DNA of 64,000 bases from Utricularia gibba (taxonomy: Eukaryota > Plantae > Magnoliophyta), in NCBI GenBank assembly GCA_002189035.1, contig NEEC01000019.1, positions 682,001-746,000 on the forward strand, in the 5' to 3' direction. This document shows positions 2,407 to 55,300 of this stretch, piece by piece; the first letter of the stretch is position 1, and every line of letters begins with the position of its first letter. Below the pieces are notes generated by a model that saw nothing but the letters and a program-made list of their open reading frames with translations, was not told the origin of the DNA and searched no databases. The position numbers and the translations under genes are program-made.

Positions 2407-3398
2407 TTACAAGGAATTGTGTGATTAATTTTGATACCTGTAAAAAATATTTTAATAGATCGAAGTAATGAGATAGGTAAATGATAACTGATATTTCAAA
2501 TAATAATAACAATAAATTATAATAATTTGTATCTTTATTTTTTATCAATATATTTTTTTATTTTTTGAAAAAATATCAATGTTCATTACTTTTGTATGAT
2601 ATTGTATATTTTAAAAACATAAATTTTATGATTTATGTTTTTTATTTCAAAAAAAAATTGATATAAAATTAAAATAATTATTCTATTTAATTATATTTAC
2701 TTTCATATATAATCATATCAATATTAGGTAATGAATCTTATATTTTATACTCTTTGGTCACTCAATGTCTTCTTTGAGTACATTTTCCATAGTCGTCAAT
2801 GATCTATGCTCTATTTCATGATATTATTTGATTTGATCATTTAACTTTCACATTATTTTTTCTATGTTGGGGGGTTAGAATAATCCCTCCATTTAATCAT
2901 ATTTCCTATTTCATTTGTAATCGATATAAGATATCGAAATTAAATCTCATGCTATATACTCTCCCCCATTTTAGTCATGCAGCATTTATGTTGCATGCAT
3001 ATCCCATCATTATCCCATATATGAATTTGATTTTGATATCAAATATTATATTACATATGTATTATTTGCTTAGAATATCCAAATCTCGTATTTCACATTC
3101 TATTCTTTTGAATAAATTGACTCATTTGAGATTGGTTACTCTATTTAAGCACATTCCTATCCCATACTATTTGAGGGATATCTACGTAGTGTTTGAACGA
3201 GGCCTTACACTTGTGACGAAGCTTGAGCACTGGAAGAGCCTCATCAGCGGGTGCTGTTGTGTAGAATTGGGTAAGGTTTTTAAACTAGTGTAAAGGTCCT
3301 GCACCCGTGGACCATCCCTTGGGTGATGGTCCCAAACTCCATCAATTTCAACACCGCACCGTGTGAGAGTTACACTGCCTCAATAACTCTGCTAGGAT

Positions 3399-47665: not shown

Positions 47666-49985
47666 ATGGCGGTAACGTTTATACCTGCTTATGTGGATTT
47701 GCGCTATCACTTTTAATGTTCAAATGATTATCAAAATTCAATTGTACATGCGATGGCCTGAAAGTTTCATATGTTAAATTTTCAAAGTCATTTCAAAGTT
47801 TTATGCTGGTTCGTCTCAGTTGACTATCTTCAGTTTGTATGGATGGATAGTACCATACCGACTGAATGATCACCTGTTGTGAAAACACTGGTCTCACTCT
47901 ATTGTTTCAGCAGAATTACATTTCTCAGTGTCATTTGCTGCGTCTTTTCTGATTGATTTTCCTGAGAATACCTGCATTTTTCTGCTATTTGATCCACTGC
48001 ATGTTCTTTTATCAGGAAGTGGGGTTACAAGAGAAGCAAATGCATTCTTTTTCAACCTCATCTGGTCAATATAATCAATTCTCATGTCCAATATGTTTGA
48101 GCAATGAAAGTTGTCAAATTGTTCGGTCAAGAACCAAGTTGATGAATACTCTGATAGACAAGGGAAAGCCTCGTGAAGTACATACTCTTTTCAAATCATT
48201 ATCAGAAGAGGGACACAGACCTTCACTCGTCACTTACACCACAGTTTTGGCAGCTCTGACTATGCAGAAGCGTTTTAAGGCCGTTTCTTCCCTCCTTTCC
48301 AGTGTAGAGAAGGATGGACTTAAGCCGGACTCAATATTTTACAATGCAATAATCAATGCTTTCTCTGAATCGGGTAATATGGATGAGGCAATGAAATTAT
48401 TCAAGAAAATGAAGGAAAGTGGATGCAAGCTAACGACAAGCACCTTCAACACATTAATTAAGGGATTCGGCATTGTAGGCAGGCCTGAAGAATCCTTCAA
48501 ACTATATGACTCGATGTCAGCTGAAGAAGATGTGAAGCCGAATGACAGGACATTCAATATTCTTATTAGAGCTTGGTGCAACAAGGGAAACACTGAAGCA
48601 GCATGGGATATAGTGTATAGAATGATTTCAGCTGGACAGAAACCTGATGTTGTAACGTATAATACAATTGCAAAGGCTTATGCTCAGAAGGGAGAAACCA
48701 GCAAAGCTGAAGCTATGATTTATCAGATGCAAAATGACAAAGTTGAACCCAATCAGCGTACTTGTGGTATTATTCTAGATGGCTACAGCAAGGAAAGGAA
48801 TATGCAAGCTGCAATTAGGTTCTTGCATAGAATGAAAGAGCTCAGAGTGCAACCAAATCTTGTTATTTTCAACTCACTGATCAAGGGGTATCTCGATACC
48901 AATGACCCGGATGGTGTTAATGAGGTGAAGTTAGTAATAGAGTAGTACCAAACTTGCTGTTTTCAGTCGAACAATTACCTCATGCATTTTGTTATGTGAA
49001 TTTACTTGATGCTAATTTTGTGGCAGCATCATATTTCAGTACAAGTGTGTGAATGTGTCTTCCCTAACTGCCCTTTATTATTTGAACATTTCTTTGTTGA
49101 TAGGCCCTTTCTTTGATGGAGGAGTTTGGTGTGAAGCCTGATGTGGTAACATACAGCACCATCATGAATGGGTGGAGTTCCAGTGGAATGATGGACAAAT
49201 GCCAAGAGATATTTGATGATATGACAAAGGGAAATATCGAGCCAGATGCCCATGCCTACAGCATTCTTGCTAAAGGATATGTTCGAGCTGGAGATCCCGT
49301 AGAAGCAGAAGGGGTCCTGAAGCAGATGGCGAAAGCTGGTATTCATCCGAATGTTGTCATATTCACTACAATCATTGCGGGTTGGTGCAATGCTGGGAAG
49401 ATGGAGCATGCCCTGGAAGCATATGAGATGATGTGCGAGATGGACATATGTCCAAACATGAGGACTTTTGAAACGCTCATATGGGGATATGGAGAGGCCA
49501 AGCAGCCCTGGAAAGCGGAGGGAATCTTCAAAATCATGGAAACAAAAGGCATCCAACCTCGGAAGAGAACCAGACAGCTTGTGGCTGATGCATGGCGAGC
49601 CATTGGCTTCGTGAGTGAAGCCAAGAGGATCATGGATGGCTCAGTGGATGGCCATCACACTCGCACGCAGGAGCAAAACGTTAACAGCAACGGCAACTTC
49701 AAGGAAAAAAGCGGTCCGATAGAGCTGCAGAGTGAATCTCCTTCAGCCGCCTTCATGGCTCATGGGGATGCCTTGAAGCAGCATAACGGTGGAAGCACAG
49801 GCACTGGGAAGCACCACATGGTGCTGAATACTTCTTCATCATGGCGGTCCAGATGCATCATCTCCATTGCCAAACATTCCAGCCCATGCGGGTTCAAAGG
49901 GAAAACAGAACTGATAAAAAGAATGCAGTTCACTTCCATGGGAAAGGAGGTTTGTCCAGTGCACCCGTGCAAGGTGATATGCTGA
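47666..49985 (+). CDS. P-class pentatricopeptide repeat protein (At5g21222/At5g25630-like)
   Basis: Tandem 35-aa repeats ([60 protein letters not shown]) after VRSRTKLMN; intron 48925-49103. The start (micro-exon ATG GCG at 47666 spliced to 48016) and the 3' end are inferred. Confidence 0.9.
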
Positions 49986-50301
49986 ATGAGTTGCCGTTTT
50001 GTTCAGCATGTTCATTTCCACTTGTTTGTATTCCCATTTCTAAACATTCAGCTCCAATTGTTAAAGGAAATCCCGCTTACTTTTATGAGGCTTCACAAAT
50101 AACATGAAGATTTGTCTTTACGGCTAGCTTTCTGCCCACAAGGTCCCATGGGCAGAAATTCAAAGACAACGTGGTGATTATAAACGCCAAAATACGCCAC
50201 AAATGAAGGAAGCTACCATTGCAGCCAAATTATAGATTCATCATCATATTACTTATTACAATTCCGAACACGACCATTCTACAAGAACAGTAGTAGTGGT
50301 T

Positions 50302-50430
50302 AAATGTCAACATTTTGGAAGCTCGCCGCTCATTGCAATGGGGCAGCAATCCTCCTGCGTAGGAACTGCAATTCTCCATCGACTGATATGTTAACATGAT
50401 GAAGAGGAGCATATCTTCTAATGGAATCAC
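50302..50430 (-). ncRNA. Possible H/ACA snoRNA (weak)
   Basis: Two hairpins (gattccatt/gatgg with gatatg/catatc; gctgc-cattg/caatg-gcggc) and a 3' ACA+3 nt (acattt). The H box is non-canonical (agaatt). Lies within the snoRNA cluster. Confidence 0.3.
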
Positions 50431-50443
50431 CAAGTCAACTGAA

Positions 50444-50524
50444 GCAACTCAGTCCCTTAGATGTTCAGAATGATGCGATCATATCCGCAGTCATTACAGG
50501 TCTGTAAGAACTCATCATCGTTAC
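50444..50524 (-). ncRNA. Box C/D snoRNA, snoR19-like (U25/snR56 counterpart), two 18S guides
   Basis: Stem GTAAC/GTTGC, box C ATGATGA, guide TACAGACCTGT before D' ATGA, guide GAACATCTAAGGG before D CTGA. The guides pair with adjacent 18S segments ACAGGUCUGUG and CCCUUAGAUGUUC. Confidence 0.92.
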
Positions 50525-50573
50525 TTCAACATATCATCACCTTGGAGCTAAACACAAAAAAGCTTTTAATGGT

Positions 50574-50703
50574 TGATGTAGCTGCCCAAGTGTTCTCCAC
50601 ACATAATAAATGAGGAAGTGACAAGAGCAGCACGCATGATTTTGCTTCTAGGGAACGAGTTGAAAGGAAATGAAGTGAAGACCAGTCAACCAGATAGCGA
50701 AGC
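50574..50703 (-). ncRNA. Candidate box H/ACA snoRNA
   Basis: Hairpin 1 cttc..gttga/tcaac..gaag, hinge containing ANANNA (aaatca), hairpin 2 gctgctc/gggcagc, then ACA plus 3 nt (acatca); about 130 nt. Target not identified. Confidence 0.6.
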
Positions 50704-50748
50704 TATAGTCCCAAGTTTAAATCTTGTGTGAAAATAATAGTTAAAAAA

Positions 50749-50828
50749 GGCCTCATTGAGAAGATTAGACTGTCTACACAAATTGCTTCAGACATATGCT
50801 TGTCATGGTAAATTTTTAATCATCGGCC
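50749..50828 (-). ncRNA. Box C/D snoRNA, U27/snR74-like (18S Am28)
   Basis: Stem GGCC/GGCC, box C GATGATTA, guide GACAAGCATATG before D' CTGA pairing with 18S 5' CAUAUGCUUGUC. The terminal D box is the variant ATGA. Confidence 0.88.
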
Positions 50829-50894
50829 TACACAAAGACTGAAAATACAGAACACCAACACATGCCACGAAACAGAACTAAGATCATAAATGTT

Positions 50895-50973
50895 GTCATC
50901 AGATAGGAGCGAAAGACATTCATAATAATCATTGGTATGATCATTTGAACTATGCTTCTGATCCTCATTTGAC
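50895..50973 (-). ncRNA. Box C/D snoRNA, U80/snR60-like (two 25S guides)
   Basis: Stem GTCA/TGAC, box C ATGAGGA, guide GCATAGTTCA before D' ATGA, C' ATGATTA, guide GTCTTTCGCTCCTAT before D CTGA. Pairs with 25S UGAACUAUGC and AUAGGGGCGAAAGAC; D+5 gives yeast-equivalent Am817 and Gm908. Confidence 0.93.
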
Positions 50974-51064
50974 CAGAACAAAAAGAAATTTTCTGAAACT
51001 ACAAAACAACGGCAATACGGAGGCGAATCAAGGTAAAAGATAGAAATATAAACATGAAGAAACA

Positions 51065-51136
51065 AGCCTCAGAAGGAAGGCAGTAGTGTTATGTAATCAC
51101 AAGTTTTCATGGACACCACGTAAATCATCATCGGCT
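51065..51136 (-). ncRNA. Box C/D snoRNA guiding 18S Am420 (yeast numbering; snR52/SNORD83-type site)
   Basis: Stem AGCC/GGCT, C ATGATGA, D' ATGA, C' GTGATTA, guide CTGCCTTCCTT directly before D CTGA; complementary to 18S AAGGAAGGCAG. Confidence 0.9.
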
Positions 51137-51256
51137 GATTAACCCAGAAACACAAACGCACATAGAAAACTCCAGAATAAGGTAAAAGATCCAACATTCA
51201 CAAGAAAACACGAAAAACGAACGAATTTAGAGATGAAAGGAAATGCACGAAAACTA

Positions 51257-51358
51257 TGGACTCAGTTTATGGGTGGTGATATATCAGAATGGTCGGCATG
51301 GCAGGATGAATGCCAATACGACGAACGAGACCTATCACAAAATCGATCTTCATCGCCC
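51257..51358 (-). ncRNA. Box C/D snoRNA with two 18S guides (snoR32-like)
   Basis: Stem TGGGC/GTCCA, box C CGATGA, guide AGGTCTCGTTCGT (18S ACGAACGAGACCU), internal hairpin ttggcat/atgccga, guide CACCACCCATA before D CTGA (18S UAUGGGUGGUG). D' box is degenerate. Confidence 0.85.
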
Positions 51359-51514
51359 AGACTCCAATACATGAAACCACACAAGGTGAAATAGATTCTG
51401 AAAACCCCAACTACATCGTAGATCCGGAGCGCTCATGGAAGGATTTGAGATGTCGCGATCTTAAAATAGGAGAAAGACGCCGGATCCAGACGTCGTAGGT
51501 CGGCGTTCCGAGCG

Positions 51515-51593
51515 GTATTTATCAATTTCATGTCAAACCCTAACCCTAATGATCGTGGGCCTATTCTTAATGGGTCCAGTAGTTTACGGCCCG
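51515..51593 (-). promoter_or_regulatory. Site II + telo-box + TATA promoter module of the snoRNA cluster
   Basis: Site II-like TGGGCC (51556-51561), tgggtcca and ggcccg; telo-box AAACCCTAACCCTAA (51535-51549); ATAAATA on the minus strand (51522-51516), in the order expected for minus-strand transcription. Confidence 0.75.
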
Positions 51594-52397
51594 AAAAAAG
51601 ATTTGGTCCAAATAGTTCGTTCACAGCCCGAACTTCAAGGAATGGACGCTTTTCCGGGTTTGGCGCGAAGCTTCATCCACAGCCACTCAGCCAGCCCCTT
51701 CGCTTTTAGGTCGGTTTACTGTTTGCCTTTCCATTCATTCTGGATGTTTGTCTTCTTGTTTTTGTTTTCTGGGAAACCCATTGCTCGTTGGGTAGTAGGG
51801 ATGGTTGCAGAGGAGTCATCCATGCAGAAATCGAGTCCCCTTCACTTCCGCAAGGTGTTTGCTTTAAGTCCTAGCGAGTAATATGGTTCAATGAGATGGG
51901 ATGGGAAATAGGAGAGATGTTGATGAGTAGTGAATGATCTGCAAGGTGTTGGTGGCTCAAAGATATGTGCTGAAGCAGCATCAGGGACTTCCAAGAAGTA
52001 TATCCCTGATGCTGTCACGAGCATCAGGATACTCCGATCCTTGGGGAGATGAAACTCTCAATCTCAGTTACACATAAGAAGCTTGGAATGATGTAAATGA
52101 AATGCATTCAGGGATATGATGATACACTGCAGGAAACACCTTTCCAAAGGGTTTTCTATAAATAATTGTGCAAGCATCACTGGCCACAAATTTGTGACAT
52201 TTACAGAAACTATCCCAGCATCTATGTAAAAGAATGGAATGGTACAAAGCATTGAAGTTGGTCGATCAATTATCTGGATTCCTCCTTTGTTGCAGTTGGA
52301 CTTCGTACAACTTCATAACTTCAATGTAACTTATGCTGCGTTAATGCCTCAAGTCGAGGAGTCTTGGGAGGGATTCTCTCAATGCCCCCAACACTCT

Positions 52398-55300
52398 TCA
52401 GATGTGTTTGTTCTCCAGGAATGAGGCAATGCTGACAGCAACCGCAGCAGTCCTGAGAGAAATGGGAAGATTGGCAAGGCCGTTGCTCAGTGGCTGTACA
52501 TCTTTGGAATCGGACACAGGCAGCGAAGAGGTCAACTCTTTTTCATTGGCTGATTCTGTTTGCAAAAGAGAAGAGTATCTTGTTTCTGCACAAGGAACAC
52601 AAGATATAGGACATGTCAGCGAACTGTATGAATGATGAGCAAGCCCACATTTTGGGATCAGTAGCAGAGATATCGCCAATACTCATGAATCCAACAACGC
52701 AGCAACAAAAGAAAATGACACGAACTTGCCTTTTATTTCCCCCAAAGTGATGAGCCTGTTAAGGCATTCTCGAAACTTTGTTAAAACTATTCGTTCTTGC
52801 TCGGCATATGACTTGGTTACTCCACGCTCAAGTGGCAACTGGGAAGACATGTTATTATCAACCTCTAACCTCTTAGGAGAAGCAGTGAACATGGCATCTT
52901 TTTCATCACACATTAGAGCTGCAGTACTGGGAGAAACCGGTCTCCCTTTAGATGAATCAGCTCCATCTGAATAGAATTCCTCTGGTCCAGTTTTCTCTGC
53001 CTGATCATCAAATGAAGATGCATCATTGGGAGTTTTCTCATGGGTTGAAGGCTCCGATGTCTGAAGTATTGAAGTAGGCGCTGCTCTAAGGTTTTCAGCC
53101 TGCTTTTCTACATCTCTTTCATCTGTAACCATCAGAAGTACACCATCCGCAACATATAACTCAACCGAAATTGGCAAATGATCTTTTTTTTTTTTAACTA
53201 AATCAGCGATTGTGAACATAAGATCAGATAAATTGAGATGAGAAATCATGCAAAATCGTAATGAAGACAACGATTAATGAATGAAACGTTGCTGACAATT
53301 ATTTATTTTTAAATAAACACAATTTATATTGAAGACACGAAGAGAAATTATGAGAAGCAATATTGAAATAAAACCAGAAACAATAATTGGCACAATCTAT
53401 AAACATTGTAACCAAAAAATACAATTCAGCAGTCAAAGGAGATATGATAAATCTAAAGCACAAAAAAAAAAGAACACCTGCTAGCATCTTTGCAGTTTGT
53501 CCAGAATAAACTACAAGCACTGAACAAAGTTCCTTCAAATCCTGTGGCTGAATAATATCGGCCAAGAGGGACCTTCAACAGCAGTTTCCTGGTTAGTCTC
53601 CAGCCTAAAAGAAAAATAAAGAATGAAAGTACTCCCATACCTATAAGCGAACTTTGAAGGACCTCGGCCTGGAATTCCACCAGGCCGAACAGCAGGAGTT
53701 GAAGATGAGGGAATAGAGGCTCTATCATTGTGACTAGCCTGGTAATAAAAAACACAAAAAATATAAATAAGTAGGTAAAAGAGGCCCTGAAATATTTGAA
53801 GTTTGGATAAAAGTTTGTGTTCCTCGTCAAATGGAGAACACATGAACAAATGAGCTTGCCTTTATTTCAAACGGATTTTTACCTGTTGAAACTGTCCAAG
53901 CTTGCTTACAGGATCTTTTAGTGTCGACCCAAAACAGAGATCCTGTCCCTTCCTTTTTTTGTTATACGGGAGAGTGCCAAATCCAGATGACCCAATCGCA
54001 CCTGTAATTGCAGCATTTGCTGCCTGCTGGATAAATGACATGTTAGCATGATCGCCATGAAAGAGAGCCTGCCTCTCTTCACTTCCTTCAAAATTCTTGC
54101 AATCCATGCATTTACAATTTTCAGAACAGAGTATGTTTGCTTGGAAACATTCACAATACTTCTTGAGGCACCCTGATTTCTTGCAGTGGCATCCTTTATT
54201 GTGCTTTCCTGTAGCTAAACCATCTTCATCCTGCATTAACAACATTGTATCTCCCATTTAATGTTTTTGGTTAGAAACTAACGCAAGGAAATGTAAGGAC
54301 ATTGGAAATACATCGCAGAATTTTAATGCTCAATCCCCCCACTGAAACCCCCGACAACACATCTGCGTTTAGAAGCATGCAGTTTTCCATTTCTCATTTT
54401 TCTACTTCATTCAAGAGAAAGATAAAATAGCATTAGCGTAGATTTCTTTATAGCAAAAATTGAAAAGTGAGTCAAGCTTACTCATCCAACCTCAATGCTT
54501 CAGGAATGTATCAGAATATCCAATTCTTACATTGAAATACGGCTTTGAAAGAAAAGGAAACTTTCAAAATGGCATTCCAAGTTGTGCTATTACCCGGCTA
54601 TCCCTAGCTCCATGTGGACTGCTAGCAATTTTTGGCCTAAAAGCATTTGGATTGCGCTCCAATGTTGCACCAACAGCTTCACGTCTTGCAGCTTCATTCT
54701 CGACATTGTTGTGGCAATTCACACAGTTGCAGCCATCACAATAGATTCCAGAGGCAAAACATTCACAATACCTGATCAGCAATAATTGATGAACTAACCT
54801 TAATAAAACAGGAAGCATGCGGTTCAGAAATACACAGTTTTTAAGATGACAAACGCTACAAGAACACCAGAAAAGTAAGAAAAATAAAAAAAAATTGGTG
54901 TTAGACACTGCAAAAGATATGATGCACATGTTTAGCAGTAGGGAATCAGACAATCATCAGCTTTGATATATCTTCGATATCACCGTAACAACGATCAAAA
55001 CCTATTTGAAGGTGTCTTTGCATTCAAGTAAACAAAGAAAAAAACATAACTTCTTCCCAGATACAAGGCACATCTAAGTGGATACCACAACATGCATGTA
55101 TTAAAAGATGGAAGAGCAAACTGCTTACAACTTCAAACACCGTGAATGCTTGCAATTACACTGTTTTTGCTTTTTCGGAGTACCGTCTCTTGCTTCATTT
55201 AAATGTTGCCTCCCTCGCGATCTTGGTGATTCAGGGTTCCTGTTTGGAAAAAGAAAAGGAAAATGAAGGTATCAGTCTCGTAATCCAACTAACAAGATGA

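Follow-up and report, generated by a model that had tools for sequence, protein, structure and literature searches.

We identified, in the gap between the PPR and TCX genes of Utricularia gibba (50302-51593), what is very probably a polycistronic gene for box C/D snoRNAs, independently transcribed by RNA polymerase II and of the standard plant kind. Here we refer to the whole 64-kb stretch of DNA that was analysed (64,000 nt) as the window. The gene comprises five box C/D snoRNAs identified by Rfam cmscan, all on the minus strand and arranged along the transcript in the order Z43-U83-U80-U27-SnoR19 (Table 1). The family membership of the units, the complementarity of their guides to rDNA, the geometry of the targets, the motifs of the promoter and the presence of one transcript covering all units are established. 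As had been noted before, the locus is invisible to ORF annotation: ORF-based gene calling leaves the region blank, yet it encodes five guide RNAs directed at eight conserved rRNA methylation sites, all of which have been experimentally mapped in Arabidopsis. Since the locus is made up of known families with known target sites, in a textbook plant arrangement, we regard it as an annotation gain rather than a discovery.

Table 1 Features of the snoRNA locus in window coordinates, listed from the promoter to the 3′ end of the transcript
Feature	Position	Strand	Basis	Guides and predicted targets, or remarks
Site II element TGGGCC	51556-51561	+ (as read)	Motif scan	
Telo-box AAACCCTA	51535-51542	+		Then a further, partial telomere-like repeat, to 51549
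TATA-like box ATAAATA	51516-51522	-	Sequence reading, motif scan	
Start region and 5′ leader of precursor	51359-51491	-	X6 and X1 contig ends	
Z43/SnoR32	51258-51358	-	RF00330 snoZ43, 87.8 bits, above gathering	D′ to 18S A1330; D to 18S U1266 (predicted, rDNA duplexes)
snoU83	51065-51136	-	RF01179, 62.3 bits, above gathering	D to 18S A440 (predicted, 11-bp rDNA duplex)
snR60/Z15 (plant U80)	50891-50977	-	RF00309 snosnR60_Z15, 64.2 bits, above gathering	D′ to 25S A826; D to 25S G917 (predicted, rDNA duplexes)
U27	50749-50828	-	RF00086 SNORD27, 34.8 bits, below gathering (52)	D′ to 18S A28 (predicted, 12-bp duplex with 18S)
H/ACA-like candidate	50574-50717	-	Hairpin, AAAUCA (50637-50642), hairpin, ACA (50577-50579) plus 3 nt	
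SNORD25/SnoR19	50443-50525	-	RF00054, 76.9 bits, above gathering	D′ to 18S G1434; D to 18S U1448 (predicted, rDNA duplexes)
3′ tail of precursor	50204-50442	-	Poly(A) site at about 50219	Alternative contig end at 50204
AAUAAG element in the 3′ tail	50252-50257	-		

Box C/D units

The Infernal cmscan search against Rfam matched five C/D families, four of them above the gathering threshold. The remaining one, U27, was matched with an E-value of 8.5e-4 in the local cmscan. All six plant U27 homologues found were also sub-gathering in Rfam (35.9-45.2 bits), and, judged by these homologous sequences, the score obtained here is at the level typical for plant U27 genes. A terminal stem of 4-5 bp, a C box and a D box are present in each of the five units. 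The preliminary description had placed minus-strand C/D units in the PPR-TCX gap, and the Rfam matches, boxes and stems support five such units where it had put them.

The C boxes of the five units read UGAAGA, UGAUGA, UGAGGA (Z15), UGAUUA and UGAUGA. Four units have CUGA as their D box, and U27 has a non-canonical AUGA; the latter form was found in 5 of the 7 aligned plant U27 copies, with the remaining two having ACGA and AUAA. The three spacers that separate Z43, U83, Z15 and U27 are 62-121 nt long and contain 52-54% U, in agreement with the U-rich spacers described earlier, whereas the fourth gap, between U27 and SNORD25, is 223 nt long with only 38% U. A sixth C/D unit, at about 50192-50262, was considered and rejected, with hits only at an E-value of about 3, far below gathering, and an extent that runs beyond the poly(A) site.

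Guide elements and their targets

Guides were paired with 18S and 25S rDNA from metagenome contigs representing other eukaryotes (115 loci). The target was taken as the base opposite the 5th guide nucleotide, and target sites follow the Arabidopsis numbering. Eight guides formed 10-14 contiguous Watson-Crick pairs with this rDNA; the pairing of the Z15 D guide extends over 15 pairs, one being G-U. The bases opposite the 5th guide nucleotide were A, U, A, A, G, A, G and U, and the targets of the double-guide units lie 64 nt (Z43), 14 nt (SNORD25) and 91 nt (Z15) apart. Both the target bases and the spacings equal those of the Arabidopsis RiboMeth-seq sites A28, A440, U1266, A1330, G1434 and U1448 in 18S and A826 and G917 in 25S, and the Arabidopsis Nm map assigns the same eight sites to the same snoRNA families (Wu 2021). 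The claim that the guides fall on known 2′-O-methylation positions is matched by the rDNA and by the Arabidopsis map. For seven guides, 42-115 of the 115 rDNA loci conserve the target core; for the D′ guide of Z15, 13 of 115 do so. As a shuffled-guide control with a G-U-tolerant score discriminated poorly on a 10-kb locus, the case rests on the contiguous Watson-Crick cores, the identity of the target bases and the exact spacings.

In Z43, both guides are invariant across 8 plant copies, and the D′ box is degenerate (CGUA); a degenerate D′ box was also remarked for SnoR32, to which 18S U1266 and A1330 are assigned (Wu 2021). The D′ guide of snoU83 had no rRNA target, and alignment with other plant copies showed this region to be shortened and non-conserved. 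The Z15 guides are conserved in the alignment of plant homologues, and their two 25S sites are assigned to U80 (Wu 2021). In case of SNORD25, the two 18S sites are assigned to SnoR19, and dual guides are described for sites 11-18 nt apart (Wu 2021). Overall, guides are invariant across plant homologues, whereas the flanking sequence is divergent.

The 3′ guide of U27, UCUAAUCUUCUC, sits directly ahead of the AUGA D box. In Arabidopsis this element is assigned to Am43 of U6 snRNA (Wu 2021, Tables 1 and 3), and by analogy the U27 identified here probably also guides U6 snRNA methylation. Both U27 guides are invariant in 7 plant copies, and the combination of the AUGA D box with the U6-directed guide is common to most plant copies found.

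H/ACA-like candidates

In its title, the preliminary description had counted one or two H/ACA members in the cluster. This was not borne out, as no H/ACA family of Rfam was matched at E ≤ 10 by two candidate segments searched in isolation. In the segment at 50302-50442, neither a hairpin-H-hairpin-ACA fold nor an Rfam match was found; its MFE fold is not bipartite (z-score -0.8), and a basal stem beside the ACA is missing from the second hairpin.

The other segment, within the gap between U27 and SNORD25, has a partial case. It would make the locus a mixed C/D and H/ACA cluster, with the gap encoding a sixth member, an H/ACA RNA (snoRNA or scaRNA) about 144 nt long, which we consider conceivable but unlikely. 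Like box H/ACA snoRNAs, the candidate can be read as two hairpins joined by an ANANNA hinge, with an ACA 3 nt before its proposed end, and each putative pocket is placed 15 nt from its H or ACA box. It is the sole hairpin-ANANNA-hairpin-ACA solution within the precursor, with a fold z-score of -2.13, and an equally good architecture was obtained in 1 of 150 dinucleotide shuffles. The gap itself is longer and less U-rich than the true spacers, as described above, and the four variants that other runs carry within the candidate are all in loops or bulges. Moreover, mixed C/D-H/ACA clusters are known in Arabidopsis, where SnoR5 is present in the U31-U33-U51 cluster.

On the other hand, the candidate differs from box H/ACA snoRNAs in having no family match, rRNA target or conservation, and in the atypical form of its first hairpin. 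A search with this segment alone likewise gave no Rfam match at E ≤ 10. Its pockets had no target conserved in the 115 rDNA loci, with shuffled pockets performing as well or better, and no homology was detected in the other fetched plant clusters. Hairpin 1 folds as a three-way junction, its 3′ pocket strand is only 3 nt, and the variant density in the gap resembles that of the spacers. As a model, the candidate could be a lineage-specific orphan H/ACA snoRNA, or an snRNA-directed scaRNA, newly inserted into an ancient C/D cluster, a reading that we hold to be rather doubtful.

Promoter and transcript

A site II/telo-box/TATA module had been proposed directly upstream of the units, and we located it at 51516-51561. 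Its site II and telo-box motifs fit the published TeloSII definition (PMC4660826). In the whole window, just 7 telo-boxes and 29 site II (TGGGCY) motifs are present on both strands. The RNA contigs have their 5′ ends at 51491 in run X6 and at 51479 in run X1, which puts the TATA-like box 25-43 nt upstream of them.

The transcript data consist of assembled contigs, not raw reads, from four long-RNA runs labelled 'RNA?'. One contig of run X1, 1276 nt long and identical to 50204-51479, covers all five units, unspliced and with no joints. Run X1 also contains a paralogous U27-SnoR19 transcript. In run X6, the contig starts at 50219 and is preceded by 22 T, corresponding to a poly(A) on the minus-strand RNA. 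Depth was zero in all four runs at 51574-52137, and the bin at 51480-51573 had a depth of 1.04, from X6 only. Zero depth was found on both flanks of the transcript, with the neighbouring genes assembled as separate contigs. The preliminary description had proposed a polycistronic gene with its own promoter, and the TeloSII/TATA module, together with one collinear RNA contig, the poly(A) end and the silent flanks, supports this.

Variants between runs were rarer in the snoRNA units (5/423 nt) than outside them (33/853 nt; Fisher p = 0.008), but leaving out one divergent contig makes this depletion less significant (p = 0.07). In one X6 contig, the RNA 5′ end coincides exactly with the 5′ end of U27 (50828), followed by 20 non-genomic letters, and the poly(A) is retained; this hints at an intermediate of spacer processing.

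The unprocessed 1.27-kb RNA assembled in several runs at a k-mer depth of 22-63, above the 3-19 that these runs show for contigs of the adjacent TCX 3′ region, although a contig of the PPR 3′ region had a depth of 93 in run X5. Depths of contigs reflect expression poorly. Perhaps the full-length polyadenylated RNA also functions itself as a sno-lincRNA, beyond its role as a precursor, since Arabidopsis lncCOBRA1, a proposed sno-lincRNA, has the same TeloSII promoter type. We find this very improbable: lncCOBRA1 is not polyadenylated, and the non-snoRNA parts of the transcript show a higher variant density and no conservation in other plants. An intronic snoRNA cluster in a larger spliced host gene, as is often the case in rice, would agree with a sequence resembling a 3′ splice site in the tail (about 50285), but we reject it as extremely unlikely because no joint was present in any of the four runs and the contigs begin close to the TATA box and finish in a poly(A) tail, with zero coverage beyond either end.

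Proposed expression of the gene

For the independent polycistronic gene, we propose that the TeloSII/TATA promoter would drive a transcript of the minus strand that is about 1.27 kb long and extends from about 51491/51479 to 50219/50204. This precursor is not spliced and can carry a poly(A) tail. By analogy with the established plant pathway, the five C/D snoRNAs would be excised by endonucleases cutting within the spacers, after which exonucleases would trim the ends up to the assembled snoRNPs, and it is in this way that we infer processing to mature 70-100-nt RNAs in Utricularia gibba. Again by analogy, the snoRNAs, with fibrillarin, would guide 2′-O-methylation of the rRNA of this species at the eight sites, each unit acting on the targets given for it in Table 1, and U27 probably on U6 snRNA as well.

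Comparison with known snoRNA clusters

Plant polycistronic snoRNA genes with TeloSII promoters were reportedly described by Leader et al. in 1997, Brown et al. in 2001 and Gaspin et al. in 2010. The polycistronic TeloSII snoRNA genes of plants (Qu et al. 2015, PMC4660826) resemble the gene described here in having snoRNAs on one strand, short U-rich spacers and one Pol II transcript over all members. No substantive difference from them was seen, and the polyadenylated precursor was readily assembled here. That polycistronic snoRNA genes are an established plant system, as had been stated, is in line with this published gene type.

The neighbouring PPR gene is the orthologue of At5g25630, with best identities of 60-69% in various eudicots. 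No snoRNA was found beside the PPR orthologue in the fetched Liquidambar, Coptis and Escallonia loci, and a search with a spurious 81-aa ORF that crosses the cluster turned up no transcripts of close relatives.

The combination of members had been suggested to be lineage-specific. However, Z43, U27, U83 and Z15/U80 co-cluster in other plants, the differences being confined to the order of the members and to SnoR19; hence the combination is not lineage-specific. PMC5122169 summarises an Arabidopsis snoR32.2-U27.2-U80.2 cluster and a rice cluster 43 consisting of U27-U80b, with the same linked families, where Z43 corresponds to snoR32 and Z15/snR60 to U80. These families have the same targets (18S U1266/A1330, 18S A28 and 25S A826/G917). 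Relative to the Arabidopsis order given in this second-hand account, U27 follows U80 in Utricularia gibba, and snoU83 and SnoR19 are additionally present.

In plant DNA from metagenome contigs, we detected Z43-U27-U83-Z15 tandem arrays at two loci (L034 and L084). They share four of the five families with the Utricularia gibba gene, with identical guides and the same AUGA D box in U27. Unlike the gene described here, these arrays place U27 directly after Z43 and are without SNORD25/SnoR19, and their snoU83 keeps a longer D′ region that is lost in the Utricularia gibba copy. Further plant metagenome loci carry Z43-U27 (L042) and Z43-U27-U14-U14-snoR21b (L025).

The yeast and human counterparts in Rfam (snR60, snR74/U27 and snR56/U25) agree in guides and box architecture, the yeast-equivalent targets being A28, A420 and G1428 in 18S and A817 and G908 in 25S. 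In contrast to vertebrate U27, the plant 3′ half carries the U6-directed guide. The locus adds one more data point to the reshuffling of member order in plant snoRNA clusters, in which linked families are retained.

The snoRNA units and their precursor

Five box C/D snoRNA units lie on the minus strand between the PPR and TCX genes, in the interval bounded by the 3′ ends of both, and the locus represents a standard polycistronic C/D snoRNA gene of plants that had not been annotated. The preliminary description, which had proposed a hidden polycistronic cluster of five such units in this gap, was correct in its core claim, but the object is an ordinary one. At gathering thresholds, Rfam cmscan returned 4 matches in the entire window, all of them within the cluster and on the minus strand, and the fifth unit, U27 (SNORD27), was detected below gathering in a permissive scan of 50000-51800. 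Each of the five units has C and D boxes and a terminal stem of 4-5 bp. The three spacers between Z43, U83, Z15 and U27 are 62-121 nt long with 52-54% U; the gap from U27 to SNORD25 has 223 nt and 38% U. The SNORD25 C box is preceded, 16 nt upstream, by a second C-box-like GUGAUGA (50534-50540), possibly either a relic or an alternative 5′ end.

Features of the cluster and related plant loci (L numbers, genomic contigs from metagenomes, with their own coordinates). Pairs are contiguous Watson-Crick pairs on the eukaryotic rDNA loci; the base is that opposite the fifth guide nucleotide.
Feature	Position	Strand	Evidence	Guide pairing or description
snoZ43 (SnoR32)	51258-51358	-	Rfam cmscan, 87.8 bits	D′: 12 pairs, A; D: 11 pairs, U, 64 nt upstream of D′ target
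snoU83	51065-51136	-	Rfam cmscan, 62.3 bits	D: 11 pairs, A
snosnR60_Z15 (plant U80)	50891-50977	-	Rfam cmscan, 64.2 bits	D′: 12 pairs, A; D: 15 pairs including one G-U, G, 91 nt downstream of D′ target
SNORD27 (U27)	50749-50828	-	Permissive Rfam scan, 34.8 bits (gathering 52), E 8.5e-4	D′: 12 pairs, A, position 26-28 in contigs starting at 18S 5′ end
SNORD25 (SnoR19)	50443-50525	-	Rfam cmscan, 76.9 bits	D′: 10 pairs, plus a G-U and one further pair, G; D: 13 pairs, U, 14 nt downstream of D′ target
Site II element	51556-51561		Motif scan	Directly upstream of cluster
Telo-box	51535-51542		Motif scan	Directly upstream of cluster; with second partial repeat
TATA-like ATAAATA	51516-51522		Motif scan	Directly upstream of cluster
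L034	482-2291		Rfam	Tandemly repeated Z43-U27-U83-Z15 units
L084	37-1059 and 7765-8343		Rfam	Two Z43-U27-U83-Z15 tandem arrays, ~6.7 kb apart
L042			Rfam	Z43-U27
L025	898-2112		Rfam	Z43-U27-U14-U14-snoR21b

Judged from its sequence, U27 is real despite its sub-threshold score. All six plant homologues were likewise under gathering (35.9-45.2 bits), and in an alignment of 7 copies both GACAAGCAUAUG, which guides on 18S, and UCUAAUCUUCUC, the 3′ guide, were invariant; thus, the low score reflects a model derived mostly from animal sequences rather than decay of this copy. In Arabidopsis, Am43 of U6 snRNA is the site attributed to the 3′ guide (Wu et al. 2021, Table 3, PMC8053127). The terminal D box reads AUGA in 5 of the 7 copies, ACGA or AUAA in the other 2, and CUGA in none. 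With AUGA as the D box, and with what we take to be the U6 sequence, the fifth position of the 3′ guide comes out one nucleotide off.

Four public runs, seen as assembled contigs, were compared with 49600-52400. One 1276-nt contig of run X1 is identical to 50204-51479 with no joints, and a contig of run X6 extends to 51491, at a distance of 25-31 nt from the TATA box. A further contig of X6 starts at 50219 after 22 T, which represent the poly(A) tail of an RNA transcribed from the minus strand; 33-38 nt upstream of this site is an AAUAAG element. In all four runs depth was zero at 51574-52137 and 50070-50163, coverage of the bin 51480-51573 came solely from the terminal bases of the X6 contig ending at 51491, and the neighbouring genes were assembled as separate contigs. 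Together, the contig ends, the poly(A), the silent flanks and the separate neighbour contigs point to RNA rather than contaminating DNA, and to independence from the TCX gene. At the contig level, the precursor is polycistronic, polyadenylated and unspliced. An intronic location of the cluster is argued against by the unjointed X1 contig, the poly(A) end and the silent flanks.

One X6 contig (record 17) that retains the poly(A) end at 50219 stops exactly at the U27 5′ end, 50828. Past this point it carries 20 non-genomic letters, which in reverse complement end in GGG and look like a template-switch oligo. The contig may represent a 5′-trimmed, still polyadenylated processing intermediate.

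With motifs defined as in Qu et al. 2015 (PMC4660826), we found all three elements of the proposed site II/telo-box/TATA module at 51516-51561; such motifs are few, with 7 telo-boxes and 29 site II motifs over both strands of the 64-kb window.

Guides and rRNA targets

Our rDNA search pattern was built from the two Z43 guides alone, reverse-complemented and separated by a gap of 40-62 nt. It matched 120 metagenome contigs; 115 of them were eukaryotic rDNA, in which the gap was almost always exactly 51 nt. The Arabidopsis RiboMeth-seq map (Wu et al. 2021, Table 1, PMC8053127) assigns 18S U1266 and A1330 (64 nt apart) to SnoR32, A440 to SnoR15/U16, A28 to U27, G1434 and U1448 (14 nt apart) to SnoR19, and 25S A826 and G917 (91 nt apart) to U80. 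Our predicted targets agree with these sites in base identity in 8 of 8 cases and in spacing in all 3 pairs, so that the methylation targets claimed at first, now paired with real rDNA, were borne out. Their yeast and human equivalents (A28, A420, U1262, G1428, U1442, 25S A817/G908, and human A1383) are consistent by offset, with the yeast numbering as we presume it to be. The SnoR32 guide for A1330 adjoins a degenerate D′ box, and both SnoR19 guides are used, at sites 11-18 nt apart (PMC8053127). The degenerate box is CGUA here and invariant in 8 plant copies.

The D′ guide region of snoU83 (51099-51131) is ~10 nt shorter than the Rfam consensus, unlike other plant copies, and had no rRNA match among the rDNA loci; hence this copy probably functions with a single guide. 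At position 51071, run X6 has a snoU83 D box of CCGA, not CUGA (A>G on the plus strand); this would mean a broken D box in an allele, accession or homeologue.

H/ACA candidates

One or two H/ACA members had also been claimed. The permissive scan of 50000-51800 gave no credible H/ACA family, its sole H/ACA row (18.6 bits versus gathering 70, E 2.2) overlying the U27 unit. When all non-C/D parts of the precursor were scanned for hairpin-ANANNA-hairpin-ACA, there was one solution, 50574-50717, which we consider unlikely, if not negligibly so, to be an H/ACA snoRNA and an extra cluster member. It folds in this form in isolation (z -2.13), each pocket is 15 nt away from its box, an equally good architecture arose in only 1 of 150 dinucleotide shuffles, and the interval holding it, between U27 and SNORD25, is unusually long and low in U for a spacer. 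However, it had no Rfam match even when searched alone and no homologue in the other plant loci fetched, its first hairpin is atypical, and neither pocket had a conserved target in the 115 rDNA loci, where shuffled pockets often did better. The other candidate, 50302-50442, whose start lies 3 nt past an ACA, was rejected, having no hairpin-hinge-hairpin fold (z -0.8) and no Rfam family.

Conservation and comparison with other plants

The adjoining PPR gene (47953-49985, plus strand) is the orthologue of Arabidopsis At5g25630, with best identities of only 60-69%, to various eudicots. It is convergent with the snoRNA gene, their RNA 3′ ends being roughly 180-200 nt apart. The orthologous loci in Liquidambar, Coptis and Escallonia had no snoRNA nearby; thus, the position beside the PPR gene is not conserved.

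BLASTN matches of the precursor to the fetched plant loci were confined to the snoRNA units; spacers, leader and tail never matched. Variants across runs were rarer within units (5 in 423 nt) than outside (33 in 853 nt; p = 0.008, or p = 0.07 without one divergent contig). A 1950-nt paralogous contig of run X1 (record 2), from elsewhere in the genome, has a SnoR19-like segment (matching 50440-50504 with 7 differences) and a U27-like one (matching the 18S guide, 50787-50805), ~870 nt apart. The U27-SnoR19 pairing therefore exists twice in the species, and the paralogous transcript is perhaps from a duplicate cluster.

Because a Z43 gene read in antisense fits the rDNA pattern as well, five plant genomic contigs were recovered too. 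One of them, L073, has a weak MIR396-like match (3024-3168, 41.6 bits versus gathering 80) 2.7 kb downstream of its Z43 gene. As L025 joins Z43 and U27 to other members, this pair is the stable core around which the other members vary. Conserved clusters have been described in Arabidopsis (snoR32.2-U27.2-U80.2) and in rice (cluster 43, U27-U80b) (PMC5122169). Together with the arrays in the plant contigs, they make 4 of the 5 families habitual neighbours, and the suggested lineage-specific member combination did not hold, Z43, U27, U83 and Z15 being co-clustered in both L034 and L084. The cluster is thus composed of catalogued families aimed at mapped methylation sites and is related to the described Arabidopsis and rice cluster; from the Z43/U27/U83/U80 clusters of other plants it differs only in order, with U27 after U80, and in the presence of SnoR19.
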